Assembly: GCA_030704615.1 (NCBI GenBank)
Contig: CM060733.1
Span: 5,208,001 to 5,272,000, forward strand
Length of the DNA stretch: 64,000 nucleotides
Origin: Takakia lepidozioides
Lineage: Eukaryota; Plantae; Bryophyta
Reading direction: 5' to 3'
The position numbers and the translations under genes were made by a program. Positions 5,476 through 56,271 of the stretch are shown here, piece by piece. Below the pieces are notes generated by a model. It saw only the letters and a program-made list of their open reading frames with translations. It had not been told where the DNA came from and ran no database searches. The stretch's first letter is position 1; each line of letters opens with the position of its first letter.

Positions 5476-6024
5476 AGCTACAAAGCTATAGCTTTGATTG
5501 CCTCTCCTGCCGAGACGCTGGTTATTCGGAGCCACCCCGACTCTCGCGCTCATAACCCTGCTAATTTCTTGCTCTTGTTTCTTGGAGGAAACCACCTGCA
5601 TGTAGTTCTCGCTCGTGATTGGCTGTTGCCTCTTTGGGTAACTTCTTAATTTAACTCCCCTCAATGGACTTTCCCCCCTGGAATGTCCACTAGGATAGCA
5701 CATGCGGCAAAGATCCCCCTTTTCTGTACTCGTAAAGGGTTCCGTTACCCTTGCCCTGAATGCATTAATGGGCCCACAAATAGTTTGGGTTGATGTACCG
5801 GGTAGGTACTTTGACGGCCCAATTTGTCTTCTTGCATGATGACACCCGCTTTTGCAATATATGCACTGCGGTGTGCTTCGTCCTGGCGACCACGTGTTCG
5901 TTTCTAGACCTGCCTCCGTCTTTCCCTGTCCGCGTGGCACTTTCTCCGAGTTTAACTTCCAAGCTGTCTTTTCACCCGCCGGCCACTTTCCGGGCGCTAA
6001 CCCACGTCCACCTGTCACTGACCC

Positions 6025-9300: not shown

Positions 9301-9410
9301 TTAAGCAACTTAGGCCTTCCAGTTGCATCTCTACAACCTGCTCCCACTCTGGGTGTTCAGCAAACAGGGTAGCTTCCTGCTCCTCATCAAGTCCTCCCCT
9401 CCAGGAGGTT
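6323..9410 (-). pseudogene. Gypsy pol: reverse transcriptase, RNase H and integrase (with frameshifts and stops)
   Basis: RT motifs WLSPIVIVPKKNGKLRVC, MPFGLCNAP, VFLDD. RNase H motifs HCDAS, NYSTTERE. Integrase motifs [24 protein letters not shown] and GPY. Confidence 0.95.
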
Positions 9411-9630
9411 AGCTATTTCATGAGCATGAGCGGCATGAGCAGCATGAGCGGAGTAGCAAGACAATCGGTTTTCATGAGCAGAAGTACAAATTTCGAAAAT
9501 AAAAAACATTATAAAACATTAATTTAATGAAATGTGTCAGAAAAAACAAATATATTATACGGCACCTTGAAGGGGAAATTGTAGTTTTGAGAGTTGTGCT
9601 CATGATATTTCGTCTTCCGCTCATGCCAAT
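9411..9630. repeat. Cluster of CATGAGC/GCTCATG motifs at the junction with gypsy pol (possible DNA-transposon subterminal region)
   Basis: About five direct copies at 9419-9480 and two inverted copies at ~9598-9625. Confidence 0.45.
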
Positions 9631-9682
9631 TCCCAGCGACATGTGCAAAAATGGCGCCGAATTTTGGTTAAGAATGTATCAC

Positions 9683-11786
9683 CTTTTCTGCACCATCCAC
9701 ACAAGATGTGGCTAGACGATAGAGCTTCTCCAATGTCATCGTGGGCTTCAGAGCGCGGGAGTAGTGCTTCCCCACCTCCACCAGAAGGTCGGCACCAAGG
9801 GCGGGATCAACTATGGCCACGTACTTTACCATCCGCGACTTGTACTTTATGCGGGCCCTCACCTCCGCAGCTTTGAGATACGATTCAAGTGCCGGGAGGG
9901 TTAGATTCTTCTCCTCTGACTCCATGTAGAACCTCCGCGCATGTGCCAAATCCTGCTGAATTTTCGTCTGTCAAGAATGTGCACATAAGATTAGAGATTC
10001 TGCTCAACACTTTTTCTTCTATTGGGGGAGGAGAGACAGATTAGCTCAACAAAACAGTCAGGAGCTTTACCCAAAATATGTAGTCCACCATGGCGTCCAT
10101 GCTCAGCCTATACCAGGTTCTGTCTACCTTTGCCTCCGACTTGCGCAGGAGGTCGGCACTGAGCGAATTGGCAAACTCTTGCACCCCCTGCTTCCTGACA
10201 TCCTTCACTCGGAAGAGCATATGGGACAAGTTGGTGGCAATGAAGGCATTCTCAGTCACCCTGCAATGCCACATTTCCATCAAACAATTCTGAAATGGGA
10301 ATTTACAACAAATATGAGGATTCGCAATGAAATGACTTACAATCGGATGGGTCCAAAAGCAAGAGGCGTTGTAACTTATGAGTTGATGTCCGCCATTGCA
10401 GCTTTGAGAAGACTGCAATCTTTGGGCCCCGCAACCTTCAGCACAACACACTCCACGGCGAAATGCCAATCGAGGTCGTTGGGGTGGGCTTCGGCTATGT
10501 GCTCCATCCATGCCAGGAGGCGATGATTGCCGTCCCACACGTAAAACATCTTTCCGGACAAGTGCTGGAAAAGAGGATCAATAACAATCGATCTCTCGAA
10601 CTCCTCATTTCGCCTTTGCCAATGGGGACCCCATTTGTCCACCTCATCGGAAGTGTGGGCACGGGAAGCTCCGTGGTCGTTCTCAATGGAAACGTAAAAC
10701 GCGGCAGACCCCATTCAATATCCATCCCGGAAAGAGAATTTCAGCTTGTCGATATCGCCTGGGAGGGCAGGTCTCACCACCTGCAAAGACACCAAGCGAC
10801 AAAGGGGAATTCGAAGCTTGGCCGGGTACACCATGCCCCCCAACACCCTGTCAATGTTGCTGTGGGTTGCCTCCAATATCTTGGCAGCGGCCAACTTCAT
10901 ATCCGCCTCCGACATGACGTCTGCTGCAGAGGGGTTCTCCGGCAGCCCACCAGGACTGCCAAATCCAGCCTGTATGCTGCGGGTTTGGGGCCTGCGGATG
11001 TTCGAGAGGATGTCATCCTGGTCAGAAAGCTTGGTGTCATCCTCCTCAACATGGTGAACCACCGGCGAAACCACCTTGAGCACTCTCCCTGTCTCTACTG
11101 CCATCTCCCCGGCTTCACCTCGAACTTGCACAATCCGTGCTCTTTGTGGTGTTCTTTCCTCTCCTCCACTCTCCACCGTATGGGTAATTGCGGGGGCTGC
11201 TCTTGTCCGCGATGGTGTAACCGGTGTGTTACTGCCTCTTTGTGGTGTCTTGGAGGGATCCACCGTCTCTGTGCGTCCCTCGCTTATATTGGCATCTGTC
11301 ATTTGGGCACCCCTGGCCTCTTCAGTGGCCTTTTCTCTTTCCTCCTGGCTAGCCTTCTGTCTCGCCTGTTCTTTTTCCCTCTCACGGGCTTTCTGTTTCT
11401 TACTAGGGCTAGCAGCAGGGGAGCCCTCCAAGGACGACCACCTTTGATTGAGGAGAAGGAACACCCTCGCGCGCACTGCTCACTCCCCCCTCCGCAGCCC
11501 GTGACGGCTCTCTCGCCGGGGATTGCATGTGCTTAGCTTTCTTCTTCTTCTTTGCGTGGGCGGGCCCTACTGCATGTGCATCAACAACCTCCATTGCCGG
11601 ATCTGCTGTCCTCACGTCCTCACGCCCTTCACCTGCCATGCCGCCTGCACCAACCTCCCCAATGCCTATTCTATCGTACCCTCGCTGCAGGTCCTCCCGT
11701 CCACCAACAAAAGGTTGAAGTTTGCCCTCTCGCCCCAAGTTGGGCGATTCAAACATGCGATTAGTTGGAGCGGTCGATGATACCAC
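9683..11786 (-). pseudogene. Spliced ParB/Sulfiredoxin-domain gene (exons ~11786-10380, 10260-10071, 9955-9683), 3'-truncated
   Basis: RIPLCRLVSLQVVRP...FYVWDGNHRLLAW fits the ParB/Srx GxxRxxA motif. Splice phases are compatible. There is an in-frame TGA at 10715-10717, a donor reading ATAAGT at 10379, and a KKKKK NLS-like run in the low-complexity N-terminus. Confidence 0.7.
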
Positions 11787-12709
11787 CAGCGTGCCGGGCT
11801 CGTTGTCACTCTGTCATTCTCAAAATCGTCAAAACCAACATCGGTGCCAAAACCAACATTGCAACGAGCAGCGCAACCACCATAGCAACAATCGTGGAAC
11901 AACAATGAAAACAAAACAAGTTTAGGAAGTATGGAGTGCCATGGAACAACATTGAAAACAAATCCAACCAATGCCTAAGAATGACATGCACAAGCAGCCT
12001 TCTCCAGAGCTGCCGGCTTTGCACACGCATTGCAAACTATCTAAGGTTCACTCAACCGGTAATATGAAACACGATGAACAAATGATCAGGAATTCCATAA
12101 GACGGGAAAACAGGGTGAAATGTTTTGAAGGCACTTCATCTTCTCAGCTCAGCATGGATTTCCTTAATTTTTAACCACTCAGACCTTGATCATTCTTCGC
12201 AACAGCTGCTGCTTTTGCGATGCAGCCATACGCTTCCAGCGATGCCAGGATGAAGATGCAAAAACAAAGCCAAAGCCAAAGCCAAAGCCAAAGCGAACAA
12301 AGCGAAAGCAGAAGTGGCTTGCCTGAGAGTACTCGGCTTCAGTTGGCGCGGGTTGTGAGCAAGACACTGGAATCTCCTGTTGGAGCTTAAGTTTGGCCAT
12401 GCGAGAGATTGGTCGTCGTCCATAGTACAAAGCTTTCAACTTCCGCCGCAGTCTGGATGTGAGGTCTCTCTTAGGAGAGCCACGTCCTTCAGGCGGCATA
12501 AGTCCCAGCCAAAATGGAAAAAGATCTCAGTTTTTTGGGGTACATGCCTCGAATAGAAGTTAATCCAAGATTAGCATCAGATTTAGGGTACGTATGAAGG
12601 AAGCCATGTGTCGCCAGCCCGAATAAAAACGGACGGCGGTGGACATTTAATGCCCATCTACGCAATTAAATGTCGGATAAAGCCCTCCCTATCGGATGAA
12701 ATATGACGC

Positions 12710-29453: not shown

Positions 29454-31672
29454 TCTTCCCATAGTCAGTTTCCAATATCTCCCTAATGACACCCACGTAT
29501 CGCAGGCTTTCTACCACCTCCTTTCTTGCACTGTTTGTAGATACATGGTGGAAAAGAGATGACACCCCTGAGTCATATGACACTCTACTTGTGCCAATAT
29601 TGGTTGAAGACACCCTGTAGTGGTTTCCATAAGCTGACATGCTATTGTATGAAGTTGCAATGATCGAGGGAGGTCTGGACAGGTCCAACATTTGGCAATA
29701 CATGGGATCAGATTCGGAATTGGGAATTCTTGCCACATGTGAGCGCACAACATCAACCAGCCAGTCTGCAAATTTGGGAAGAAGAGCCAAGTCAGGTGGG
29801 TACTCATAGTCCTCCCCATGAGCTGCCCTCCCTTCAGCACGTTCTTCTTGCAGAAACAACCAGCGACTTGCCTCCACACGTGCTCAAATTGTTTCATACA
29901 TCCTGACATATATGAATGTGTCCCTCCCTGAGAACCAACACGTGCACATAATGCAATTACATGACAACCAACAACTACAAACAGGCATAAACATCAACAA
30001 TGAACTGTTGCATTGACACCATTGTTAATGAGCTTCTCACTTACTCGAACATGGTGCGCATGCTAGGATAGTTTTCAATGATGTACTGGTGGAGAACTGA
30101 ACACAGGTCTGCCGTGAATTTGCGGGGTTTCCCTGCTCCTTCCAACACGCAGCCAGACACGGATTCCTCCTCTCCTGCATCCCACACTCTTCGTCGAGTA
30201 GCATCAAAACTGGCCATGTACTCTGTGCAAAAGCCAAGAGCCTCCTCAAACATGTAGCCCTTGGCCATACTGCCTTTGGGCTTTGCCATGTTGCGAACGT
30301 ACCCTCTGTAATCCTTCATAGCCCGCTCCACATGGTACATCCACCGGGAGGTCACAGGGCCACACAAATCCAGCTCGTCAACTAGGTGAATAAGCAAATG
30401 CGTCATTATATCAAAAAAAGAGGGTGGGAACTCTTTTTTAAGGAGGTAGAGTGTGACAGTCACCTCCTTCTTCAGCTCTTCATGCTCGCTGGGATCAACC
30501 ACTTTTGCACAGAGTTTGTGAAACACTCGGGATACTCGCAATATGGCATTTCGTACGCCCTTAGCCATTAAACCACATAGATCAAGAGGGAGAACTTGCT
30601 GCATAAGCACATGGTAGTCATGTGAGAGAACATGTTTTTTAAAGGCAGATGCATACCCCGTTGGCACTTTCAGCTTTGTGATTGTGTTCAGGAACACCCT
30701 CAACTCATCTCCTGTGAGCACATACGACACTGCGGGCATCACGAATGTGTTCTCCCTCGTGGGATGCCTTTGCAACCACAGGTGGGGACAAATGCCTTGT
30801 AGCTCAAAGTCACGACGCACCTTCATGGTATCCTTTTCCCCAAAAATTGTCTTGATGATATTTTCTGTGACAGTCTTCTCGCAAAGCATCATGTCAATGG
30901 TGTGGCAGATTAGTAGGTGCTGCAATTCATGTGCCAAAACGATTCACAATAAAGTCAAATGGTGACACAAATATGCCAACACACTAACACACATCTGTGA
31001 ATAAAAAACAGATGCACAAATATGCGAAATAGACAAGCATGAGTGAGGAGTCCCCGTACCTCCCAATAAGGCAGACGATACAGAATGGACAGCCGCTTGA
31101 CACCATAGATTTTTGAGGGATCAGCCTCTGCGATTGATTCCTCATCCTCAACCCATTTTGAGTATTCCTCAGCACGCGTCTTGATTTCACTGCCTGTCAG
31201 GAGCAGTGGAGCATGTCTCATTTCTCGTTCGCCATTGAAGAGCCTAGATCTCCTGTATGCATGGTCGGTGAGAAGAAATCTCCGGTGCCCCTGGAATATA
31301 ATTTTGTGACAAGCTGCCGAATACCAACTCCAGAGCCACATGCACGGCAACCTACATAGCCTTGGTGAACTTGACCTGCTAGCAGGCCGTATGCAGGGAA
31401 GTCACAAGAAAGTATCCAAAAACAGGTAATAGATATGAGGAGAAGCTGTGGGATGAATACTCTGCTGACCCCAGTAAATGGGGGGACAACCGAGGCAAAA
31501 AGGTGAATGCTTGTCAGATTACAGAGAGTAGCAGATGTAATTGACCATAGGCACTAGTGTGATTAGTTGAGTTGGGTGCAATTACTCTCCCTTTCCTCTT
31601 TGCTTCTGTTTGTTATTCAAAGGTAGGATCCCTGCCCTGAGTTACATTAAATCAGTCTGGTGAGCAACTGTT

Positions 31673-31987: not shown

Positions 31988-33275
31988 AGCTCGACGATGA
32001 GCAATAGACAAGAATGAGCAAGTCAAAGTGGTAGTGGGATGGACGGCAGCTTGGGTGGTTGGGACAATGCAGTTGGGCAGTCTCGCGCCTAAAGAGTCGC
32101 AGTACTTATAACCAACAATGAGCGTCTACAGAGTGCTGGATCCCGTCATCTATATATGTGCCATGGTGTTTTGAAATGTGGGAAGTTGGATGTAGTCTGA
32201 TGGGAGGACTAAAATTGGTTCACTTGAAAGTCTAGGCAAGTCAATGGATCAATTCATGGAAAGCACCAGCATGAATTTGGGCTTTGTCACGCCTGTTTTT
32301 ATTTCAGGTTGATCGAAGCTTGCGGGGAATGGAGCCATCAATCGTGGCGTCATTTCCATGCATAAAGTACAACCATTCAGTCTTTGCTTCGAAGGAAGAC
32401 ACACAGTAAGCATCATGACCTCCGCTGTTCCTCTTTCTCTCATCCCTCCTCCATAGCTGCGTGATATTAGAAATATCGTTCCTATAATCCCTGGTGGTTA
32501 TATTGGGAGCCAATGCCCCTTACGCGGAACATTTTCTCTAATCAGCCAGTAGTTGTGTTTGTTGTGCTGCTAAGTACTTTAAGTTCTCAAATGTACAGGG
32601 TAACTCGGGGCTTCCTTATTGATAAAAGCTTCGTGATACTTGAGAGAGAATTTGTGTAAGTGCCATAAAAATGGGCAGTCAGACAGTTTGGGGCAGGAGA
32701 GGGCTAACATGAATTAAGTGTAGTGAGCTCTCATCCAACAGTACTAGCATTTGCTGGTGTTAGCTGTAGTTCAGTGAAGAATTTCATGCTACTGTTCCCT
32801 ACCTGCAATTTTCCATTTTGCACACATCAAGTTTGTGTAATGGTGCTTAGACATATTCTTAGCGATGTTAGTTTGTTTCACATATGTCAATGTTGTTGTT
32901 GCTATATTGCCTGAAAGCTTGCTCATGTATCTTCTGGTGTTTTCGGGTTGGATGGCAGTTGAAGGTGGGTGACCAAGTCCGGCCAAGCCAACGTATACAT
33001 CTTTTGCTCAGGCATTTGGAAGTCTACTTAGACTTTGCAGCTTTGTGCATTTTTGTAGCAGCACCGGATTAGATTATGGAACGGGTCTCTTAACATTAAG
33101 TCACGTTGTATTTGAATCGATGTTCCAATTTCAAATGTGTTTTCATGTTTCAATGGTGTTTTCGTATGCTTTCAATGGTGCTTTTGTGTTTCAATCTACG
33201 GTCATGTACACGACTACCTCCCATCCACAGAGCCTCCGCCACGTGCCACTTTCACCCCTCGTGTTCGCCCATACT

Positions 33276-34350
33276 TGTTAGAGGGCTGCTTGGGACTTAG
33301 ACGCTTTTACGGGTTCTGTGGGGTACCATTAATTTTTGCGCAGACTGAGACCAGCAGGAGCCTTATGGGTGGCAGGAGCAGGCTTTAGGGGGGTTAGACA
33401 GCTCGTCATAGTCTATCACAGCCAGACACAGCTTTACACAGCCAGTCATAGCTCGACACAGCTTGACACAGCCTATCACAGTACATGAGGAACAATTATC
33501 ATTGACAAGGAACGACTGTGTGGGAACGACATCTGCAGAGGGAACGTGTTACTTCAGGGGTGACGGTTAGTTAGTTAGGTGGTTAGAACAGCTTGCGGGT
33601 AGATTAGGCAGAGCGGCAACAGGAAGGGGATCACTTCTTGAGGAGGGCGACTTGTTCAAGGGAGGAGGAGACATAATGGAGAGCGGAAACAGTGAAGAGG
33701 AGATGATGACTTGATTAAGGCTTAATTCATGCAAGCTGTAAATTATACAGTAGGATAGATTAGGGACACCATGGCGTAGGCATGATACATGATTAATCTT
33801 AATCCGATACTGAATCGATACAAACATACTGTGTAGAGAGACATGAGAGAAGCTGTGGAATGAATGCATGATTAATTGGAACTTAGTAGATACTGAAGCA
33901 ATCTGATGCTTCAGTATACACGGTAAGGTAAATTGATAACATGAAGGCAAGAAGGAATACAAATAGGAAGCACAACCATGATTCACTAGCTGTAGGTCAT
34001 GACTGATTGTTCTGAGCGGGCTGAGTGCTTAGAGATATCCAACTCTTCTATCTTGGAGTTTCCACCTCGGATAGCGAAGGGATGGGTGAGTAAAAGCCGC
34101 TCGACATTTGGCGACCATACTGGGGAACTGGGTCATGAACAACCAGATGTGATAGGCATCTGGTGGGATCATGGTGGTTGGAGAATTAAAGAATTTGATG
34201 TGAATCAAATTCCCTGTGGAACTGAGAAGAAAAGATTGTCCAAACAATTCTTTCAGAGGTTCTTGGAATTGCCAGACGGTTGTAAAGAAAACATTCTTAA
34301 GAGAGTGCATGATGCTGACCCTGAGTGGGGTCTGGAGAAAGGAGTGATAA
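33276..34350 (+). mobile_element. Gypsy copy 3: 5' LTR (33276-34106), PBS (34109-34126) and gag start, truncated
   Basis: Reverse-complement homologue of 13873-15146. Confidence 0.9.
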
Positions 34351-34972
34351 AGATTTATCAGGCGGCCTGTAGAGGAAGAGCATGTTGGTTACCAACACTG
34401 GTTTATGTGATAGCATTGCTATCCATTAAGCGAGTAGAGTTTGAAGGCTGGGAGGAAATGAAGGTGAATGTTTATACTCATATGCATGAGGAGCTTGTAC
34501 TGGTGAAGAATTGGATTCCAAAGGATATTCTGTGGATCAAACTCACACCAAGAACAACTTTTCAGACTTGTTTGCCATATGGTTATATGGTAACGGAGAC
34601 TTCTAGTATAGCCCTTGACTCGTTAAACCTTTCAACCAAATTTCAATCATGAATCATTTAATAGGGAAACTATGGTTCACCCTTAGAACCATTTTAGATT
34701 GACCTCATACTTGTCCGGTAACTTAAAGAGGGCATGTACAACACACTCCCAAAGTTTCAAATCAATCTAAAATCATTTGGCAGGGGAACGATTGGTTCAC
34801 CCATTGACCCGGTGTACACTGTCACTCTTCAAGATTCGTGGGTGTGGTGCTTGATTATCCCATATGATGGACCCAGGTGCCATGGCCAAGTAACAAACCA
34901 TTAAAACATTATGGTACGAGACAAACACGATTGAAAACAACATTTATTCAAACATGATGTAGCGTCAGAGGT

Positions 34973-36648
34973 CTACAAGTTTCTATCCATCCTCCAACAA
35001 TTTTTGGGCTCAGGCCAATTGAATAGCCCCGTCATGAAACGCTTCACAATATTTTCTAGTTTGTACCACAACTCTACTGTGTCTACACACAAGTTTTCCA
35101 GAGCGGAAGCAAAACAGGTTCCAGTAGACATATCGTTGAATAGGCTTGCATCGAACGTGTTACCCCCATTTATTGCCTGGGCTATCTTCCCAATTGCAAA
35201 GGTCTCTGATGGCACGGTTAGAGGGGGCCTACGAGGTGTGCCATCTGACTGGTTGTTGGCTACATTATGAACAATTACAATTTCAGGTGCAATCCACCAT
35301 CTATGTGCGAGAGTCTTTATCATCTTGTCTCTGCTCTCGAAAATGTACAACGTGGTTTTTGGGTCATCCGTCGTGGAGGCCATCCCCCAATCGCATACCC
35401 CGATGTACACATCTTCAGACCCTTGTGGAAAATGCAACAAGATGTTGTCGGGGGACATGTCGTTGTGCAAGAGGTGGTGATTATGGACGTTGAGCATGAT
35501 GTGCAAAAGCGCCCATGCCAATTGGGTGCGATTCTGTCGGAATCGAACCAGTCGGTTGACCTCTTGCATTTCCTGCTCCGTCCTCCGTCGTTCCATTAAC
35601 TCCCTGTTATCCCGATCATTCCCCCATTTTCTGTCAATACTCAACCATGATCGTATGGTCCCCCCATTCCACCAATGTGTATAACCTTTATTTCGACGTG
35701 GATGCAATGCAAAATACTTTATGATGCCGAAATGATGGAACTTTACAGCCAACGCCTCATTGTTATGTTGGACTTTGGCAAGCTCAGCATTTGTTTCCCT
35801 AGGCGTTTTCCCTGCTAGCTCCCAAGATGGAGGAATGAATTGATCCCCAACAATTCTAACCCTCCGAATTGTACCATACCCTCCCTGTTTGGGCGCGTCG
35901 AGTTGTTGTACATGTGCGTTTGTGGATATGTATCTCACGTTCAATGCCGCATCCGCGGACGAGGACCCTGCCTTCCATGGGAGTGGTTTTGTACGTCGTT
36001 TGGCGTGGGCCTTTGCCATGTCAGACCGCCAATCCACAAGCATAAAGAACTCCTCCTCCGAAGTTGGCATGCGATCTTCAGCTACATGTGTTCTCGTAAC
36101 AAACTTGTCCATGGTTTGCCTCAGATTCCATGTGGCATCATGGGCCCGGTCCTCCATCCATTTCGTGAACTGGAACTTCGCCCTGTCCTCCTCCCATTCA
36201 TCCCCGGCCAAAGCCTCCTTCATTCTCATCTCCATATTGTGTTGGAATCTAAGAAACCCCTTATTCCTATGTCGGACATACAAAAGATTCAAACGCATTA
36301 TGTCATCGTCCTTCAAATAATCCAGCACTACTTGCTTCACCACCTTCGTGGCCTCTACGCTTGGATAGTCTTTTTTGTTGACCTGACTATCCCGTTAATG
36401 TGCATGTTTACGCTTCCTATCTTTACGCCCACTTCCCGAGGAACCCCCTGACACTGCGTTCGAAGCAACGTTTCCGGACATGGTGAAAGTAGTCGGGGAA
36501 TAGACGCGGCTTTGTAACGGAAAACTAAACCCAGACTATTGATAACCTTATATACTAGCATACCAATTTCCTCACCCTCTATTGGTATAGTACCCAAAGC
36601 AAACTCTCCCGCAGTCCGAGGAAAAAAAGGCAAAAACTCCTCCCCCAC
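34973..36648 (-). CDS. Intronless protein kinase (456-aa ORF 34973..36343, with a probable frameshifted N-terminal extension to ~36648)
   Basis: KQGGYGTI (Gly loop), LAGK (beta3 Lys), NNEALA (alphaC Glu), HNDMSPDNILL (catalytic loop), DWG and APE. Confidence 0.85.
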
Positions 36649-36769
36649 ACAAATCCACTATCTCCCCCCCCCCACTCTCAGTCCTCGCCACCGAAGTTCA
36701 AACTCCAAGAAACCCTAGAACTGCACTCACAGAGAGGGAAAAAAGTGGGTTGGGAATGAGGGGTAGGTC

Positions 36770-37950
36770 TGGCGTGCGACCGCCTCTGCTGCCCATTCAC
36801 GCCTCGTCACGTGTCCAAGGAGCGGTCGCACCTAATAACAAAAAAGAAAAAGTCTGCGATCACCACCGGCTGGTGGTCGCACCCATTTAAAAAATAATTA
36901 AAAATGTGCGACCATACCCTGCTGGTGGTCGCACCTATTTAAAAAAAAAGAAAAAGTTGTGACCACCACCTGCTGGTAGTCGCACCCAATTTTTTTTTAA
37001 AAAAAAGAATGTGCGACCACCCTCTACTTGTGGTCGTACCTATTAAAAAAAATGAAAATGCTGCGACCACCACCTGTTGGTGGTCGCACCCATTTAAAAA
37101 ATAAGAAAAAATGTGCGACCACCACCTTCTGGTGGTCCTATTTAAAAAAAATAAAAAATTGTCCGACCAACCTTTGCTGACGGTCGCATGATTGACAATA
37201 TAAATCATAATATATGAATTTTACAGATAATTAAAGAAGTCCACGTAATGAGGCCACATCGGTTGCCACGTCGGTTCTCATAGTAATTAATCAATAGTAA
37301 AGTAAAAAAATAAACATATTTATGTACAGTAACGTCGGTTTAGGACGTGACCTGACGCACGTCCGTCGCTGACGTCAGACATGTCGCTGACGCGTCAACG
37401 CCACATCACGTCCAAATTTGCAACTAAGATTGGCGGTCGCCTAATTTAAAAAAGAAAACAAGCGACTACCGTATTGGTGGTCGCACAATTTTGTAAATAT
37501 GTACAGAACAAGTGACCGCCATATGGCGGTCGGATAATTTTAAAAATATATTAAAAAAACAGCGACTGCCATTGGGCGGTCGCTTAATTTAAAAAATATA
37601 TAGAAAAACAAACGACCACCATAAAATATAAAAATAAAAGCGACCGCCTTACTGGCGGTCGCGTTTTTTTTTTTAAATATTAAAAATAAAAGCGACCACC
37701 ATATTGGCGGTCGCTTTATTTTAAATATATTAACAAATGAAGCAATCGCCATACCGGCAGTCGCATTATATTTTGAAATAAAAAACAATAGCGACCGCCA
37801 TACGGGCGGTCGCTTAAATTTAAAAATATACAAAATAGAAGTGACCGTAATATTGCACAAAATAAAACGAAATAAAAGCGACCGCAGTAATGGCGGTCGC
37901 TTGTTTTTCATTTAAATAAAAAAATAACGACTGTAGTATTAGCGGTCGCT
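36770..37950. repeat. Two blocks of palindromic GCGACC(G/A)CC-Nx-GG(C/T)GGTCGC repeats with A-rich spacers, separated by an ACGT-rich segment
   Basis: Blocks at ~36770-37190 and ~37430-37950 with ~50-bp periodicity. Confidence 0.9.
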
Positions 37951-38399
37951 TAATTTCAAAATTACAACAAATATGGTTGTACAACCTTTTTCAGGTGGGC
38001 GCTATTGGTTCGTCATTTATTCATTTCACTTTCATCCCTCTTGGATCATATATAAGGGAGGAGGGTCACCAAGCTCCTCACTTCTTTTGGCGCAAACACT
38101 TGAGGTTGCTTTGAATATTCTCTTCCATTGAACGAGAGTGTAGCCCAAGAGGAGGGTGCGCACATTTTGCCGTTGTGGCTTCCATCAAAGCCACTTCAGC
38201 AGATTGTGTATAAGCTCAACACTACAACCCACATCGACCCACTTGGGTTACTGACAGGTATAGAAGTGTTAGGCTATTGCATTGCACTCTATATTCACAA
38301 CACGTTCATTTATAGATGACTGTTTTTTGTTGCTTACATCGCTAGGTCCCAACGGAGTGGATATTGGGTGAAGATGAGGGAGGAATGAAGCCCTTGGTA

Positions 38400-40791
38400 T
38401 ACGGCAATCCCGAACATTGTCAGTGTCATTGGTAGTGTTGAGTGCAACCTATGTGGATTAAAGCTTTCTTATCGTAATGATCGGTTGCTCGCTCACCTCG
38501 GCTATAAAGGTGTGAAAAGCGCTGGGGTGGGTTTATGCCTCAAAACATCTATGCGGGTAAAAAACCACTTTGCCCAGTGTGGAGGCAATATTCCAATGTC
38601 TTTGGATCTGAACATGACCTCTGAGCAGAACACTCCATCTTCCCGTCAGGATGCCCCGATTAGTACCCAGGGCGACTCTTGTGAGGCTTCGGGTGTCCTT
38701 GGACAAGTGGATTGTGCCGGAGCAACACCTGCTTCAACACCTCTTTGTACCCCTATACTTCAACGGAGTAGAGGATTACGACAGCAATCCATGCAAGAAG
38801 GTCTTAACTTGTCTGCGAAAAGACAGTTGGATAAAAAATGGGCGCAATTTTTCTTCGAGGCCAACATATCATTTAATGTGGCAAGGCTTCCGGCATTTGT
38901 TTCTGCCGTTAGAGCAACCTCGGAGTCCAGATCCACGTACGTGCCTCTGACTTATCACAATCTCCGCACAAGATTGCTAGAAGACGCCATGACCGAGCTT
39001 ACCCAAAAGGTCAACGATAGGATGGGCTAGTGCATCAGAAAATATGGAAGCACTATATGTGCCGATGGTTGGAGTTCTGTCACAAACAGACCGTTGTTCA
39101 ATGTCATGCTCGTATGTCCAGCTGGGGAACAATTCTTGGGACCGGTCGACACTAGCGGCGAGAAGAAAGATGGACGTTATCAATGCCAACTATTGACGGA
39201 CTTCATCGAACAGGTCGGAAGTGATATAATCGTGCAAATATGCACAGACAATGCCGCTAACATGAGAAACACTGCAGACATGTTGTTGGCACGTTATCCC
39301 TATATGTACTATCAAGGTTGTGCTGTTCATATCCTTGACCTTATTTTGGAAGATTGGGGAAAAGAACAGTGGGTGAAACAACTTGTCAAGCGAGCGAAGA
39401 CTGTTGTGTTGTTCATCCGCACACACCACATCCCTTTGACAATATATAAGAGGTACGAACCCAAATACAGCCTCCGCAATCCAGGCGAAACTCATTTTGT
39501 CACTATCTTCTTGATGGTGGATCGGTTGGTGACGGTGAAGAGCAGTCTGGAGCACACCATCATCGATCCTCAATGGAATGCATACACACGGACATTGTGG
39601 GACTCCAGAAAAGCCAAGTCATTGGGCAAAAGTCGAAAAGTTCGAAATAACATTCGCAGCGATGATTTCTGGAAGAAATGTGAAAACTTTGTTTATATGG
39701 TTGAGCCGGTGTTAATCGTCTTGCGGGAGTTTGATGAAAAGCAACCAGTAATGGGCAAGACATGGTTACTAATGCAAAATCTTGAGAAGCACGTCCAATC
39801 CTTGAGACATCATCCATTCTCCTTGGAACCTGAACTTGCGGACAGTGCTGATGATACATTTTACGACCGTCGTTCGATGGTTCGAACGGACTTGCATTAT
39901 GCGGGGGCTTTGCTCAATCCATTCTTGCTCGACAATACCATGCTCCGAGATGACGCTGATACCAAGGCCGGCCTCGTGCGAGTGCTCATGCGACTGGCTT
40001 CGCCGAACCATGCAGAGAGAGCTATATCCGAGTACCAATGCTTCTTAGATCGCCGCGACCCTTTTGAGGACATTCCAGATCCAAAAGAGCTCAATATGTT
40101 GCCACATGAATGGTGGGATCTGATTGGAGCTGGAGCAAGAAAATTGGCTCCCATTGCGAAGCGTATTCTTGCTCAAGTGTGCTCTGCCTCATCTTGCGAA
40201 CGCAATTGGAGCAGTTACTCATTTGTTCACAACAAGATTCACAACAGGTTGAATCCCGCGAGGGCTGACAAATTGGTGTATGTGTATACCAATTGCCGAC
40301 TGCTACGTGAGAGGGCAGCGGCTGATGCTGCAGCATGGTACGAGAGGAATTTGCATTCCGAAGACTCTGCTTCTGAGGCTGATTCGATGAGTGACGATAC
40401 TGAGCCTCAGAGAGAATCATCTCAGAGAGAATCATCTACCTCCGATAGTGAAGATGGATCCGATGATGCTCCCGAAAATGCATATGACCCGTTTACATCA
40501 ACAGATGATGATGCTTATATCCAGCCGACCTTTGATGACTTTCTTGAAGAAGTGCGTATCGCAGATGAAGGTGAAGCTGCAATTGTGTCATCCCCAGAAC
40601 ATGGTCCTCAAAATGAAGTTGGGGTCGACCCTCGCCCCCCACTACACGCTGAAGCCACCGGTAGTGCCCCAATGGAGCTTAGGGGTGATGTACTGCCAGG
40701 ACCGATCGACGTACGCAACCCTGTTCATACAAATGATGGTGTCGAACCCATTGTACAGTCGACGGGACGGGATCATGTCTCACCGATATGA
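38400..40791 (+). pseudogene. hAT-superfamily transposase (BED finger, DUF659-like core, C-terminal dimerisation domain) with one in-frame stop at 39028-39030
   Basis: CNLC..LAHL, FFEANISFNVA, ADGWS, CTDNAANM, CAVHILDL and WW..SASSCERNWSSYSFVHNK..NRL. TATA-like TATATAAG at ~38049. Confidence 0.92.
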
Positions 40792-41619
40792 CCAGCTCCA
40801 CCACAATGCCAAAACCGATCCAGCTCCCCATCAATACAACGGGCATTAAGGAGCAACATGGTTGATCTGTTTTCCACACGCATGCATCATTCTGCTGCAT
40901 TGGACTGGGCGGAAGTTCAAGCCTCGGATGATGACAACCTGCCACTACAATTCCACCTTAACCGACGTGTTGCGCAGCAGACCCGTGGTTCCTCACATGC
41001 CGGACCATCTAAATGCCGGTCCATCTCGGGCAGTCCCCCCTCCGGTACCTCCTTCAAGACCATCTTCGATTGCGTCCCAAGTCCATAAACGACAGATCGA
41101 CCCACAAACAGGCCAGATACCGTGGATGGTAATCAAGACCGGAGCGAGAGTCGACCTCAGAGAGAACTAAATGTGGTTCGAGGTCGCTTGCAGATTCAAA
41201 GGCCTGGACATATGAGGTCGGATAAAGAGGACGATTCCAGCACTGATCATGGCAACAGTGGTGAAGTCGAGGGTGACCCGGATTTTCAACCCACCGGAGC
41301 ATTATGATTAGGATCTTCTTCGTCCCGCCGTCGAAGCAGTAGAAGGAATTGAAGTAAAACAGCTGTAGACATGCATCGGCATTTTTTAGTGGACATGTTT
41401 ATATTTCTGTACTGAAGTAATACCAATGTGATCATTGTCACTATGAGTATTTGTATTGTTGTTGTGTATGTGTTGGAAAATAAAAGATGTTGCCCATGTG
41501 TATATCAGCCAAAATATCGGCCAAAGGCACCGTCACTCGCTCATGTTTGTGTTCGGTGATTTACTTGTGGAATGAAGAACAATTGTGCCATGCTTCCAAC
41601 TGTGCATTCATTTTTATTT

Positions 41620-43340
41620 AAATGGAGCGACCGCCAAGGTGGCGGTCACTTCTACGAGGTCTGCCCTCCGCGTGGAGCGAGGAATGAGGGGGGGGGGGGG
41701 AGGCATATAAGCTCCCAGTTATTAATTTGGAAATGAAGCGACCGCCGTTACTGGTGGTCGTTTTTTTGTTTTTTTGGAGCAAAATGGAGCGACCGCCATT
41801 ACGGGCGGTCGCCGTTATTGTTGTTTTTTGTAATTGCAGCGACCGCCATTAGTGGCGGTCGCTTTTATTGAAATTTGGTTGGAAATGGAGCGACCGCCAA
41901 GGTGGCGGTCACTTCTACAAAGTGTGTCCTGCGTATGGAGCGAGGAGTGAGGCGGGGGGGAGGGGGGCATATAAGCTCCGGGACATTCTCCCTTTACTTC
42001 TCTTGTTTTTATAAATGCAGCGATTGCCATTATTGGCGGTCGTTTTTTTTTTTTTTTTTTTTAGGCGAAATGAAGTGACCGCCATTTGTGGCGATCGTTT
42101 TTTTTTGTTTTTAAATGGAGCGACCGCCATGGTGGCGGTCGCTTCTACGAGGTCGGCCCTGCGCGTGGAGCGAGGAATGAGGCGGGGGGGGGGGGGGGGG
42201 GGGCGCATGTAAGCCCCCAGTCATTCTCCCTTCACTTCCATTACTGGCAGTTTTTGTTTTTACAAAATGCAGTGACCGCCATTTCTGGCGATCGCTGTAA
42301 TGGTTATTTTTTAAGATGCAGCGACCGCCATTACTGGCGGTCGCTTTTATTTTAATTATTTTGGAAATGAAGCGACCGCTATTATTGGCGGTCGCTTTTA
42401 TTTTAATTATTTTGGAATTGAAGCGACCGCCATTATTGGCGGTCGCTTTTATTTTAGTTATTTTGGAAATGAAGCTACTGCCATTACTGGCGGTCGCTTT
42501 TATTTTAATTATTTTGGAAATGAAGCGACCGCCTATGTTGGTGGTCGCTTATTTATTTTAAAGTTTTTGAAAATGAAGCGACCGCCTATGTTGGCGGTCG
42601 CTTATTTATTTTAAAGTTTTTAAAAATGAAGCAACCGCCTATGTTGGCGGTCGCTTATTTATTTTAAATGTTTTGAAAATGAAGTGACCGCCTATGCTGG
42701 CAGTTGCTAATTTTATTTATTTATTTATTAAATGAAGCGACCGTCTATGTTGGCGGTTGCTTATTTATTTTAAAGTTTTTGAAAATGAAGCGACCGCCTA
42801 TGTTGGCGGTCGTTTATTTATTTGAAATATTTTTCAAATGAAGCGACCGCGTGGCGGTCGCTTATTTTTTTTAATTTTTTTTTCAAATGAAACGACCGCC
42901 TATGTTGGCGGTCGCTTATTTTTTTTCAAGTTTTTGAAAATGAAGTGACCGCCTATGTTGGCGGTCGCTTATTTATTTTAAATTTTTGAAAATGAAGCGA
43001 CCGCCTATGTTGGCGGTCGCTTATTTATTTTAAATGTTTTTAAAATGAAGCGACCGCATATGCTGGCGGTCGCTTATTTATTTTAATTTTTTTTTAATGA
43101 AGTGACCCCCTATGTTGGCGGTCGGTTTTTTTTGTTTTTAAAGTTTTTGAAAATGAAGCGACCGCCTATGTTGGCGGTCGCTTATTTTTTTTATTTCCGG
43201 AAAATGGGGCGACCACCTGTTCTGACGGTCGTTTTTTTTTTTTTTTTTTTTTTTTTTCGGAAAGTGGAGCGACCGCTGGCGGTCGCTTATTTTTTTATTT
43301 TTCCAGAAAATCGAGCGACCGCCAATTTGGCGGTCGCTTC
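41620..43340. repeat. Long array (~25 units, ~51 bp) of AAGCGACCGCC-TATGTT-GGCGGTCGCTT palindromes with T-rich spacers
   Basis: Directly visible. Spacer polarity is inverted relative to 36770-37950. Confidence 0.92.
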
Positions 43341-43694
43341 TAGAAGATTCGCCCTGCACGTGGCCCGAGAAATGATGGCGTGGGGGATATAAGCCAAGGA
43401 AGGCTTATTGTCTCATCACTTCCTCTCCACACAACTTGTGTGTGCGTGACATTTCATTATTCTACGACACGTAGTCACGTGGAGAATGAAGCCATTGGTT
43501 GGGTATGGGGTATTTTTTGTCGCGATTTCTGTGAGGTCATTGCAGAATGCTCCTATAGGCCCACCTATTTTATTCTACAAAATTAGCTTTTAGGAACTAT
43601 TTTGACACCTACTCAAAATCTACTTAGCGGGGGAAAGGTTTAGAGTTACGTCTTTTTAGAAAACCTCGTTTAGTGTTGCTCCGATTGTTGTAGA

Positions 43695-44458
43695 ATGACA
43701 GAGGGCCAGGACGATGACCGTCATGGAAGAGATGACCCCAATGAACATGGACCGCCTCCTAAAAAAATCAAAGGGTCAAGGCAAGACTTGAATTGGGAAG
43801 TATTTGGTGACCCTAGCATACTAGCAGAAGAGGGCTGGAAGGATGTTCTGGAAAAGTTCTGGTGGCCGATGGCAAGATGCAAAAAATTCGTGAAATGGTA
43901 CCACATCAATCGATTGTGGCCTTTGAATAGGCATTACATGCAAACCCGAAACAATTACGCAGAGTCCAGGTCTTGCACGAACTTGCATTTCCAGCATATG
44001 GCGAATGAGGTACATTGCACATTGTGGGGTCAACCTCTCTTAAAGGGTCAAATCTCTTGCGTCCAGTGTATTGGCAAACTGCTAGTAGGAGGAACGCAAG
44101 GTTGCTATACGATTTGGAGTACATCCCGGACACATTCGGAATACAACCGGCTGCAACGTTAGAGGAACAACTAGCGGAAAGAGACCAGCGAATCAGGACC
44201 CTGCAGGACCGACTAGACTGGCAAACACTGCGCATAGCCGAGTTGGAAGCTAAATTGCAAGACATGCCTCCAAACAATGAAAGCACTGTTGTCCACAATG
44301 AGGATCGAACAAACGTCGTGGACATGGACACGGAGTTTGCGGTACCCGATCGCAATATTGACCTCATCATTCATGAAGTTACGGACGTCCTTGACCATGT
44401 GGCCGATGAAACCATGGTTGAGGAACAGCGAATTGCGGATGAGAGAAGGAGGAAATGA
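43695..44458 (+). pseudogene. Unknown ORF with NLS-like PPPKKIK and a coiled coil, one apparent frameshift
   Basis: ORFs 43695..44162 and 44015..44458 overlap. LEEQLAERDQRIRTLQDRL..IAELEAKL heptads. G-box and TATA-like motifs at ~43357-43392. Confidence 0.5.
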
Positions 44459-51513: not shown

Positions 51514-54500
51514 TGTTAGAATTGAGCAAGAACATGAACAAGAACTAAAGTCTTAGACTAAAGCTAAAACTAAAGCTCTCCTCCCAACCATAGAAACCAC
51601 CATCATACTCTTACCCTTAGACTAATGGCTTCACCCCCGAGCTTGTACAAGAAGGTCTCTAGAAAGTCCTACTTGGTCACTTCCACTTCCACTATGGTGA
51701 GCATCCACCTTCTAGCTATTCACCTTCCAAAGGTGAGTTAAACAAGATAGTCTCTTAGACTTCTAAACCTTTAGCCTTCAAGACTCTTAGTCTTCTAGAT
51801 ATGTTTAATTACTTCCAACACTCCCACTCAATTAAACCATATTATTGAGCTACTTCGTTTGTCTTTGGAGAAGAGACACCAAGTAAGGCTGAACACTTCA
51901 TGTGTTTTGTTTGTGGTAGACTCTTCGCCAAAACATCCGCAACCATATCTCTTGTAGCACAATAGATCATCTTGATCTCGCCCTTGCATACAACTTCCTG
52001 TATGTAGTGATGTTGCACTTCAATGTGCTTCGTCCTTGAATGATACTTCGGATTCTGACTTAGTGCAATCGCACTTTGATTGTCACAATAGAGAGTCGTA
52101 GGTAGTGATTGGAGATGATCCAAATCTCCAAGCAACTTCCATAACCAAATAGCCTCCTTTGCTGCTTGTGTAATGGACATGTACTCAGCTTCTGTTGATG
52201 ACAACGCTGTTGCAACTTGTCGTTTGCTAGACCAATATACACCTCCACCTGCTAGGAGAAAACAATGGCCTGAAGTTGACTTTTTACTATCAACGTCTCC
52301 TGCCCAGTCAGCATCAGCAAACCCCAACAAACTTGGATCTTTCACTCTCTTGTAGAGTAGACCAGAGGTTGATGTTCCTCTTAGATATCGAAATATCCTC
52401 TTCACTGCTTTCCAATGGGTTTGTCCGGGATTTGAAAGAAATTGTGAGACCACTCCCACTGAATGTGCAATGTCTGGCCTAGTACAAACCATGCAATACA
52501 TCAAACTGCCGACTGCGCTTTGATAAGGAGTTTTCCTCATATCCTCTTGCTCTTCTTGAGTCTTAGGTGCCATATACTTCGTAAGTTTCAAACCAACTTC
52601 AAGAGGAGTTGATGTTGGCTTACTCATCTCCAACTTAAACCTTTGTAGAATTGTCTCAATGTATTGTCGTTGATGCATGAATACTGAATGGTTCACTCGA
52701 TCTCTGCTGATTTGAATATCAAGACAGAACCGAATCTCACCCATGTCAGTCATGGCAAACTCAACACTGGTTTTTGGCAACAACCTGTGATGATCGTTGG
52801 TGACAATGATTGTGTCATCCACAAATAGAGCTATGACCACAAATTGCTCTCCCATCTTTTTCACATAGACGTTTGTGTCAGCAATGCTTCGCTCAAATCT
52901 TGCTTTTAAGAGGTAAGCATCGATCCTGGCATACCTAGCTCGAGGACTTTGTTTGAGTCCATACAAACTCTTTTGCAGCTTACACACAATAAAACTTCTC
53001 CTTGTACAAACCCTTCAGGTTGTCTCATGTAGATCTCTTCTTGTAGTTCTCCATTCAGAAATGCGGTCTTAATGAACTTCGTGATCATGTTGAGCTGCAA
53101 GAGCTAACAACACTCTGATAGAATAAATCTTCACCACTGGTGAGAAGGTTTCATTGTAATCCACTCCTTGAATTTGTGCATAGCCTTTAGCTACAAGACG
53201 AGCTTTGTACCGGTAAATAGATCCACCAGCTTTGTACTTCAACTTGAAGATCCACTTGCAACCAATGGCTCTTCGTCCTGTAGGTAACCTAGTGAGTGTC
53301 CATGCTTTGTTTTGCATCAATGAATCCAACTCAGAGTTGATTGCTTCTTCCCATTGTAGTTTGTCTGGAGAGCGCATCGCTTCCTCATATGTAGCAGGCT
53401 CAACCACTTGTGATGCTTCTTCCATAGCTTCAATGGCACTCATAGATGTAATCAGCCTACTAGGAGCTTTTCTTTCCCGCTGAGATCTCCTTAGAATTGG
53501 CACATCTTCAACTTCATCTCTAGAGTCCATATCAACAAGTGGTTCACCAACTTCGACTCCTTGATCAACTCCATCAAGTTGAACACCTCCATCATTTGCT
53601 TCAGCCATCTCTTGTATTGGCTCCTCATAAGACTCCTATTGGAAATGGTGTAATGGCTCTAAGGTCATTCCCATGTCATCTTCTCCCACTACCAAAGAGG
53701 GTATGAAGCCTTCATCAAACACTACGTCCCTACTGTGTTTGACAGCCTTAGTTGTCTTATTGAACAACTTATATCCCTTCACACCTTCTGTGTAGCCAAT
53801 GAAGATGCATCCTTCTGATTCGAAGTCAAGTTTCCTTCGCTTCTGAGTAGAGATATGGACATATACATGACATCCAAAAAAATCCTACAATGAGCCATAC
53901 TAGGCTTTTGACCACTCCATACCTCTTCTGGTGTTTTTCCCAACACTGATTTGGTAGGTATTCTGTAGATATGCTGCAGTGCCAACAGCTTCTGCCCAAA
54001 AATGATTTGAAAGATTCACTTCTTTCAACATACTCCTTGCAGATTTTTGTAGTGATCTATTCATCCGTTCAGCTACACCATTCTTCTCAGGTGTATATGG
54101 AACAGTAAGCTGTCAAGCTATTCCATTCTCTTGACAAAACTGATTGAAAGCCTTTGAGATGTACTCACCACCATTGTCAGATCTCAAAATCTTAAGAGGC
54201 TTTCCAGTTTGTTTTTCTTCAAATACTTTGAACTCCTTGAATTTCTCTAGCACTTGACTTTTCTGCCTTAGGAAATTCACTCCAACCCTCTTTGATAAAT
54301 CATCAATGAATGTCACAAAGTACCTTGCTCCTCCAAGTGATGTGGTTTGCATTGGCCCGAACATATCAGAATGTACAATCTCCAATATACTTGTGGCTCT
54401 TCGTCCACCATCCTTAGGAAATTGATCTCGATGTTGCTTCCCTTCCAAGCAACCTTTGCATAGACACATATCGCTCATCTCCTTCAATGGTAGTCCTTCC

Positions 54501-56271
54501 ACAAGATGGCTTAAGAGTTGCATCTGTCTCAACTTCTTAATACTCACATGACCTAACCTTCTATGCCACAACTCTGTTTCTGACATGACATGTGTAGATC
54601 CCAACTGTGGTGAAAATGTGGTAAGAGCACTAGAGACATGATGTTGTAATCTATACAAGCAATTATCAAGAATAGCTCTTGCTACCACAACTCCTGAGCT
54701 ATCTCTGATAGTACAACTCTTATCTTGGAATACCACTCTGTATCCCTTTGCAACAATTTGCCTTACAGATAGCAGATTTTTTGTTAAAGTACGAACATGT
54801 AGGACATTTTCCACCTCTATGGTTTCCCCTTCATTGAGCATAAAAGAGACTGAGTCTTCCCCACCAATGACATGCTTGCTATCATCTCCCAAAAGAACAT
54901 ATTGTGTAGGTGAAAGAGATCTATATGATAAGAAATGCTCTCTCTCTGAACTCATATGTTGAGATGCTCTAGAATCAACATACCACACATGCTTCTGTCT
55001 CGTAGTGGCTGAGAGAGACACAACAAATAGAATAGCATTTCTCTGATGAGTAGCTATGTTCCCTTGACTCTCTCTGCTGCTCTCATCTGCAATGCGCTTT
55101 CTACAATCCTTGATCATGTGACCAAGTTTCTTGCAATAAAAGCACCTCACTTTGGCCTTTTTGATCTTTGAGCTAGATTGAGGTTTCTGAAACCTCTGGG
55201 ACTTCTGAGACATATGTGAAGGGAGTCTTCTATTCAAGACTACTCCAGTCTTGCCTGTGAACAAAACTCTGTCTACCTCTATAGACGTACCTTGACCTTT
55301 TCTTCTTGTTTTCTCCTTGAGGAGAAGTCCTATGACAACATCAATAGTTAAGTTGGTTTGTCCTGCTAGAGACACCACAAAACCATCATAGGATTCAGGT
55401 AAGGTTGCCAATAACACCACTGCGGCGTGTTCATCAGTCACATTAGTTCCCACAGAGACTAGTTGATCTCGCAACACACAAAACAAATTCAAGTGTTGTT
55501 CAACTGAGTCTGACTCAGTCATCTTCAGACCATAGAACTTTTGCGTCGCATACACTTGCGATGTGACATCCTTCGTCTCATATATGTTTGCTAGCTTATC
55601 CCAAACATCCTTAGCAATCTTAGAACTTATAATGAGATGCAACTGATTGTCTCTCAAGCTTGTGATGATGCTAGCTCTTGCTTTCTGATCTTTCCTATCC
55701 CATATGGCTTGGCCAACAATAGTGTCAGGTCTTGGGACTGATCCATCAACCACTCCCCATAGATCTTTGTCTAGAAGGACCATCTCCATCATAAACTTCC
55801 AAGTTTGATAGTTAGCTCCATTGAATCGATCTTCCACTCTCACATCTAATGCACTCGTCATAGACATAGAAGGAGGATTGCTAGAAGACGATGCTCCAGC
55901 CATAATCAAGTTCTCTCAATCTCAACTACCAACTCTCACCTAGAGAAGAATGGCTCTGATACCATGTTAGAATTGAGCAAGAACATGAACAAGAACTAAA
56001 GTCTTCGACTAAAGCTAAAACTAAAGCTCTCCTCCCAACCATAGAAACCACCATCATACTCTTACCCTTAGACTAGTGGCTTCACCCCTGAGCTTGTACA
56101 AAAAGGTCTCTAGAAAGTCCTTCTTGGTCACTTCCACTTCCACTATGGTGACCATCCACCTTCTAGCCATTCACCTTCCAAAGGTGAGTTAAACAAGATA
56201 GTCTCCTAGACTTCTAAACCTTTGGCCTTCAAGACTCTTAGTCTTCTAGATATGTTTAATTACTTCCAACA
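51514..56271 (-). mobile_element. Full-length Ty1/copia LTR retrotransposon
   Basis: 307-bp LTRs at 51514-51820 and 55965-56271 (~9 mismatches), PBS TGGTATCAGAGCC (tRNA-iMet), PPT TGAGTGGGAG and TSD GAAAG/GGAAG. Confidence 0.97.
51842..55909 (-). pseudogene. Copia gag-pol (gag, zinc knuckle, protease, integrase, RT, RNase H) with frameshifts and stops
   Basis: CFYCKKLGHMIKDC, WYVDSRAS, LWHRRLGH, RSDNGGEY, YKARLVAKG, LFVDD and ADADWAGD. Confidence 0.96.

Follow-up and report, generated by a model that had tools for sequence, protein, structure and literature searches.

A probable decayed copy of a multi-gene hAT transposon family in the moss Takakia lepidozioides

The hAT elements are textbook one-gene transposons. 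We report the analysis of a 64-kb stretch of DNA from the moss Takakia lepidozioides (assembly GCA_030704615.1, contig CM060733.1, positions 5,208,001 to 5,272,000 of the forward strand), referred to throughout as the window and numbered from its first letter, in which the block running from 34617 to about 44460 is likely to be a decayed copy, with undetectable ends, from a multi-gene family of hAT transposons in moss-like plants. Members of this family carry, beside the transposase, a gene for a divergent protein kinase and at least one gene starting with a shared domain, termed here the X domain; the long form of such genes has a RING-H2 finger in addition. The copy in the window is some 10 kb in length and is a dead and probably truncated member of the family, in which only the X-domain start of the RING gene is kept, followed by a coiled-coil tail. 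It cannot work, because all three of its genes are interrupted and its kinase promoter is without a TATA box.

A preliminary description had taken the block for a single multi-gene mobile unit. At the level of the family this holds, on the linkage of the genes in related loci, the ends of one relative and the flat read depth across the kinase and the start of the transposase; it does not hold for the copy in the window, which is not working, has broken genes and shows no detectable ends. New here are the lesions of this copy, its read-based left limit, the X domain, the family terminal inverted repeat together with a three-gene relative flanked by a target-site duplication, the rule that an array of one motif precedes each gene, and a central cluster of a second short motif. 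If the reading is true, plant cut-and-paste transposons can keep signalling enzymes as permanent components instead of capturing them by accident, and can place several genes under one cis-code. The family, with its dyad motif, its new domain and a kinase with intact catalytic residues, also represents a testable system for the study of transposon self-regulation and of the countering of host silencing, to which the dead copy in the window contributes anatomy only.

Gene linkage, element ends and read depth

The neighbourhoods of kinase and transposase homologues were taken from public assemblies and gave ten independent loci. An X-domain/RING gene lies within 10 kb in all five of the kinase-anchored loci (L001, L002, L003/L017, L013 and L014), a RING gene is present in all five of the transposase-anchored loci (L007, L008, L009, L015 and L016), and kinase, RING/X gene and transposase are found together in four (L001, L015, L016 and L017). 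The window has the same pairing of a kinase gene (34973-36481, minus strand) beside a transposase gene (38374-40791, plus strand). All 33 kinase homologues are from mosses or from data associated with mosses, and none of the loci examined lacks linkage to the element. Among the ten loci we found neither of the two situations that the preliminary description had named as speaking against a single unit, namely kinase homologues unlinked to the transposase and arrays, and hAT copies that end at the arrays and so exclude both flanking genes.

The contig of L017 is complete at 17.1 kb, and its element holds a kinase, a gene for a 343-aa X-domain protein, a RING gene and a 966-aa transposase. In the four loci with both genes the pairwise identities are flat, at 35-46% for the kinase and 44-48% for the transposase, and the loci are too diverged for a DNA-level comparison, which gave no homology ends. 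L001 and L002 are from Ceratodon purpureus, L002 lying on the V chromosome; hAT elements are enriched on the U and V chromosomes of this species (PMC8245031). No description of a hAT lineage carrying kinase and RING genes was found in the literature.

The ends of such an element can be placed in L015, where a 10-bp terminal inverted repeat (TIR), CAGGGTTGTC, stands at 1873 and 13225 with the flanks tctatagt and tctgtagt, an 8-bp target-site duplication (TSD) that matches at 7 of 8 positions, and bounds an element of 11,353 bp with kinase, RING/X gene and transposase. This pair was found by a relaxed search limited to the zone just outside the outer palindrome arrays (described below) and is the sole match among approximately 415,000 position pairs, for which an analytic estimate gives about 0.02 matches expected by chance; a strict search (TIR 12/14, TSD 7/8) on L008, L009, L013, L014 and L015 gave no result. 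The same CAGGGTTGTC, or a variant with one or two changes, occurs at the predicted ends of L001, L002, L007, L008, L009, L016 and L017. The family consensus reads YAGRGTTGTC, with examples at 12242 in L001, at 14068 in L008, at 8706 in L016 and at 445 and 16201 in L017, where 15,757 bp with four genes lie between the TIRs. In nearly all of these loci GGACG/ACGTC repeats follow the TIR within 100 bp, and the left end of L009 has no clear TIR.

Contigs from four sequencing runs, of which X1 is the best DNA run and X5 a plant metagenome run, were mapped on positions 33000-38999 of the window. The X1 depth, which is summed over contigs and does not represent copy number, is flat at about 12,000-51,000 from the kinase through both left arrays into the start of the transposase. 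There is no step at 36776, and the kinase is therefore as repeated as the transposase, since a single-copy host kinase would show a large one. At about 34600-34800 the X1 depth drops from more than 1,000,000 to about 30,000, contig loose ends are concentrated at 34613 (41 contigs) and 34617, and a 600-bp X5 contig matches from 34617 on with a different left flank; from the loose ends and this contig we place the beginning of the family sequence in the window copy at 34614-34617. Six X1 contigs agree on the sequence that precedes 34617 in other copies, which suggests that those copies extend further to the left and that the window copy is truncated there. The boundary string at 34617 is unique in the window; the consensus sequences of the read loose ends are absent elsewhere in the window, and an insertion into a repeat could not be reconstructed from them.

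Three interrupted genes

The intronless, outward-reading kinase of the preliminary description is borne out by the open reading frame (ORF) at 34973-36343 on the minus strand, which matches Pfam Pkinase at 9e-9 (35.5 bits against a cut-off of 31.7). Comparison with L012, a 97%-identical sister copy of the kinase (protein P0001) from the X5 run, places the true start at the ATG at 36481, and the gene so extended contains a premature TAA at 36395-36397 (codon 29, which is GAA in L012), the other 456 codons being open. Upstream of the gene, 23 bp near 36770 that include the TATA box are present in L012 and in X1 contigs, as extra letters between 36767 and 36771, and are deleted here. The kinase of L012 carries a different stop of its own, a change of CGA to TGA, so that each copy is dead through a lesion of its own.

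The catalytic residues K179, E196, D295, N300 (in HNDMSPDN) and D318 (in DWG) show no variation, or next to none, among 11 family members of 28-37% identity. The AlphaFold model of the kinase, with a mean predicted local distance difference test score (pLDDT) of 68.7, has a bilobal kinase fold and matches at least 500 kinase chains of the PDB at E<=0.001, with RAF and MET on top and TM-scores by target of 0.55-0.66; no kinase group stands out from the predicted structure in this comparison. Among solved kinases, CK1 and VRK are the closest in sequence, the match being confined to the catalytic loop.

The transposase had been described as nearly intact, which has to be corrected: it is colinear with its homologues and free of frameshifts, but its reading frame is broken by two stops. 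It matches Pfam DUF659 at 9e-25 and the hAT dimerisation domain (Dimer_Tnp_hAT) at 1e-5 and is thus classed as a hAT transposase. The ORFs at 38485-39030 and 39094-40791 share one frame, and homologues of 838-985 aa with both domains are colinear from 38389 to about 40700 at 41-51% identity, the alignment with them revealing no frameshift. Read from the ATG at 38374 to 40791, the 805 codons of the gene include in-frame stops at codon 5 (38386-38388, W in the homologues) and codon 219 (39028-39030). Searches with the interrupted genes of the window were made piece by piece.

On the right, the ORF previously described as encoding a nuclear localisation signal and a coiled coil is real and is read outward, but it is one part of a gene split by a frameshift near 44150, and by virtue of its shared X domain it is not an orphan. 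Over 43731-44048 it aligns with residues 13-119 of a 1039-aa RING protein, and it also resembles the start of a 343-aa protein; both proteins are encoded in related elements. A full HMMER search with the X domain gave 53 cluster representatives (P0114-P0166), proteins of 70-1077 aa in all of which the domain lies at or near the N-terminus and the long ones of which have RING fingers. The domain is about 150 aa in length, with a W, a further W and an H invariant and C, R, E, L and W almost so; the window has the domain in full, with several of the near-invariant residues altered. Past the frameshift the gene runs into the coiled-coil tail, which ends at 44458 and has no relative among the X-domain proteins or in the related loci. 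The RING-bearing C-terminal part, well conserved elsewhere, has no match anywhere in the 64-kb window, nor was a RING-H2 finger found there.

An AlphaFold model of the X domain, built from 29 sequences, is of very high confidence, with a pLDDT of 94.9. Compared with the PDB and the ESM Atlas it gave a best Foldseek E-value of 7, a VIA Z of 2.8 and an Atlas TM of 0.46, and on this modelling the domain may represent a fold that is not yet described and is confined to these transposons. Because the model matches nothing, a role of the domain in DNA binding is only a guess.

The mapped contigs also bear on the state of this copy in relation to others. Contigs from two probable RNA runs, at 93-96% identity, lie over the coding parts of the kinase and the transposase but are absent from 36000-38600, a pattern that fits transcripts of other family members. 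When the window copy is set against contigs from other copies, A>G (64) and T>C (64) outnumber G>A (41) and C>T (23), with more A/T in the window copy, a bias that fits the C-to-T decay of a silenced copy.

Palindrome arrays and competing explanations

The preliminary description had reported arrays of the same palindrome on either side of the transposase, with opposite spacer polarity, and promoter-like segments with CACGTG at their outer ends; on both counts our analysis agrees with it. The 9-mer GCGACCGCC has 40 exact matches in the 64-kb window, all within 36776-43337, against 0.07 expected. Tandem Repeats Finder delimits arrays with a period of 50-53 bp at 36824-37169, 37479-37847, 41727-41914 and 42306-43339, and a scan for the repeating unit gives 40 dyads, each of GCGACCGCC, a loop of 4-7 nt and GGCGGTCGC, at a spacing of mostly 49-53 bp and with departures that are mostly CG to TG or CA. 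Spacers are A-rich in the left block (36776-37960, AT skew +0.17 to +0.20) and T-rich in the right block (41611-43340, AT skew -0.24 to -0.32), and units of the two blocks are 73-79% identical when one is inverted, against 61-68% in direct comparison. CACGTG stands at 36808-36813 and 43357-43362. The kinase-proximal units (36824-37169) are all of a symmetric variant, GCGACCACC / GGTGGTCGC, in which the CpG is changed in both arms and the dyad is kept; this could reflect selection for symmetry, or a paired decay of CpG that was then amplified.

Within the right block a 93-bp module, made up of a dyad, a G-run and a TATA-like sequence, is present in four copies (at 41611, 41874, 42104 and 43299), the last of which points at the right gene with its CACGTG and an ATATAAG at 43387-43393. 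The GCGACCGCC dyad precedes the kinase, the transposase and the X gene alike, and the layout at each gene in the window is that of an array followed by a TATA-like box, deleted here in the case of the kinase, and a leader of about 300 bp. The related loci follow the same rule with other motifs: GGCCGACCGCC dyads in L003/L017, GATCGGACGG in L008, GCGCGAGCGGG in the second element of L001, GGCAGTCGG in L014, GTCGCGCGC in L015 and AGTCCGACCCCC in L016, the lineage's own motif standing before each gene and often also beside the termini. That there is one motif per element, differing by lineage, would fit an element-encoded reader that co-evolves with it. The region 9279-21491 of L001 contains two different elements side by side, the first with a kinase behind CGACCG motifs (9279-9780) and the second, which starts at the TIR at 12242, with a RING-like gene, a kinase and a transposase all behind GCGCGAGCGGG arrays.

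A second short motif, ACGTC, forms clusters directly inside the TIR in seven related loci, at both ends in L017, and L008 has one small extra cluster that is internal (5887-5907). The single ACGTC cluster of the window lies at 37332-37408, between the kinase-side and the transposase-side arrays. In L017 the kinase and the transposase are at opposite ends of the element, each behind TIR, cluster and array, and because of this layout the centre of the window resembles two ends joined head to head. We read the central cluster as an internalised terminus that was inherited by the family of this genome, and not as the chance junction of two insertions, because the coverage by X1 and X5 is continuous across the centre.

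These features can be assembled into a mechanism. Each gene would be its own transcription unit, consisting of array, TATA box, leader of about 300 bp and ATG, and the arrays would serve as landing sites for a sequence-specific factor, most likely one encoded by the element, either the N-terminus of the transposase or an X-domain protein. Binding by the transposase N-terminus would have a parallel in the subterminal repeats of classical hATs, and TnpA of En/Spm, which binds repeated subterminal motifs and regulates its element, is a model for the mechanism proposed. The factor would couple the expression of the genes and perhaps recruit the transposase, while the task of the kinase and RING proteins would be to modify either the transposase or silencing factors of the host. 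The full proposal, that this hAT lineage, widespread in moss-like plants, is a self-contained regulatory system in which one of these two readers recognises fast-evolving motif arrays at termini and genes alike, the kinase and RING ligase have the transposase or host silencing factors as their targets, and the central ACGTC module records a change of gene order by end-to-end joining, is speculative, and we think it unlikely to be correct.

The arrangement at the centre of the window also lends itself to the explanation that two element ends meet head to head in the block, which would consist of two truncated copies or be a composite from aberrant transposition that was later amplified, and in which a kinase-end terminus (cluster, array, kinase leftward) would be joined to a transposase-end terminus (array, transposase rightward). 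The inward-reading kinase and transposase at the opposite ends of L017 and the position of ACGTC clusters just inside the TIR in related loci, together with that of the window's one cluster exactly between the left sub-arrays, speak for such a junction, and weak TIR-like strings (6/10 matches) flank the cluster at 37327 and 37428. These strings, however, are no better than chance, X5 and X1 cover 36800-37600 at gene-like depth with 30-50 contig variants, and no strongly supported loose end is listed in that interval; we hold a junction of this kind to be decidedly unlikely. Still less can be said for a plain single-gene hAT inserted between unrelated host genes, the kinase and an orphan ORF, with the arrays as its subterminal repeats. 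It would account for arrays that bracket the transposase and for the failure to find outer TIRs, but not for a kinase as repeated as the transposase, with homologues whose linkage to the same transposase and RING genes extends to other species, nor for the TIRs of L015, which enclose all three genes, nor for a right ORF whose domain is the N-terminus of the element's RING proteins, and it is extremely improbable.

A further alternative concerns the arrays themselves, which might be clusters of sites for host transcription factors that make the genes of the element inducible, for example by stress. The motif cores contain CCGAC or CGCG in several lineages, CACGTG stands beside the arrays in the window and in L003, and every array lies directly upstream of a TATA-like box; the cores appear to resemble the dehydration-responsive element/C-repeat (CCGAC), CGCG-box and ACGT/G-box elements of plants. 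Yet the motif varies by lineage and is constant before all genes of one element, which better fits an element-encoded reader, the strict dyad with its loop of 5-6 nt suggests a dimeric binder, and the arrays also adjoin TIRs, where hAT transposases bind. On balance host-factor sites appear somewhat unlikely.

Several observations weigh against our own reading of the block as a decayed copy of a multi-gene hAT family. No TIR or TSD was found in the 64-kb window, as the preliminary description had already remarked: a search with an exact 8-bp seed gave 0 matches, a looser one (TIR 11/14, TSD 7/8) gave only low-complexity matches inside the arrays, and CAGGGTTGTC with up to 2-3 mismatches shows no excess over chance in the window. 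Nothing like a hAT terminus stands at 34617, the left limit of homology. Among the relatives, the TIR flanks of L017 are without a matching TSD, and gene order and orientation vary between lineages, so that the notion of one fixed unit is loose. The kinase has a ratio of nonsynonymous to synonymous change (pN/pS) of 0.58 against the sister copy (17 nonsynonymous, 8 synonymous), which is not clearly different from neutral, and the status of both probable RNA runs as RNA is the guess of a tool. For the proposed mechanism in particular, the model of the X domain matches no known DNA-binding fold.

Known systems and the surrounding sequence

Like Ac/Ds, Tam3 and Tag1, the family has a transposase with an RNase-H-like core (DUF659) and a hAT C-terminal dimerisation domain, and, as in the classical plant hATs, its members elsewhere have short TIRs beginning CAGGG, with an 8-bp TSD in L015, and repeated motifs just inside the ends. 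Unlike the classical elements, which are about 4.5 kb with one gene, those of the family measure 11-16 kb and hold two to four genes, the arrays precede every internal gene too, and the window copy is without detectable ends.

The statement of the preliminary description that hATs encode only a transposase is too strong, as accessory genes have been reported in fungi, where hAT7 families carry a gene for a TET/JBP dioxygenase and IS3EU families one for an alpha-kinase (PMC12730594). The likeness lies in a cut-and-paste element with an accessory enzyme gene beside the transposase, sometimes in opposite orientation. Host and cargo differ, the alpha-kinase class being unrelated to the eukaryotic-type kinase described here, and no shared promoter arrays are reported for the fungal elements (PMC12730594); moreover, the fungal cargo genes move between transposon superfamilies, whereas the kinase here is found only with its hAT lineage. 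An accessory protein beside the transposase is likewise known from En/Spm (TnpA, TnpD), MuDR (mudrA, mudrB) and PIF/Harbinger (transposase and Myb-like ORF), but these belong to other superfamilies, and their accessory proteins, instead of being kinase or RING proteins, bind DNA or have no known function. The Lanisha elements of Ceratodon were dropped as relatives, being EnSpm-like (PMC12730594).

The features of the block are collected in Table 1.

Table 1. Anatomy of the putative hAT family copy, in window coordinates
Feature	Position	Strand	Basis
3' flank of kinase gene, still repeat family	34617..34972	-	contig loose ends, depth
Kinase gene, intronless, 502 codons	34973..36481	-	Pfam, sister copy L012
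Kinase leader and promoter	36482..36775	-	alignment with L012 and X1 contigs
Kinase-proximal array: terminal dyad with CACGTG (36808-36813), then about 7 units, 52-bp period	36776..37169	none	
AT-rich spacer and ACGTC-motif cluster (37332-37408)	37170..37431	none	
Transposase-proximal array, about 10 dyad units, 49-52 bp period, A-rich spacers	37432..37960	none	
Transposase promoter and leader, TATA-like TATATAAGG at 38049-38057	37961..38373	+	sequence reading
hAT transposase pseudogene, 805 codons	38374..40791	+	Pfam, homologue alignment
Right array block, about 29 dyad units, T-rich spacers, four 93-bp modules	41611..43400	+	
X-domain ORF	43695..44162	+	N-terminal domain shared with family RING and other accessory proteins
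Coiled-coil ORF, other frame, continues X-domain gene past frameshift	44015..44458	+	

Immediately to the left of the block lies a very high-copy repeat (33200-34613), broken off at 34613, over which the summed X1 depth reaches 1.9 million, roughly 40-fold the depth of the hAT part; the repeat contains an ORF (33999-34652, 217 aa) with no Pfam match and is covered by both probable RNA runs. The window as a whole is dense in transposable elements and includes an ORF for reverse transcriptase (RT)/RNase H (7656-9050), an ORF with DUF4218 (30041-30937), a domain that occurs in plant proteins associated with transposons, and a copia-type gag-integrase-RT element (51842-55909).

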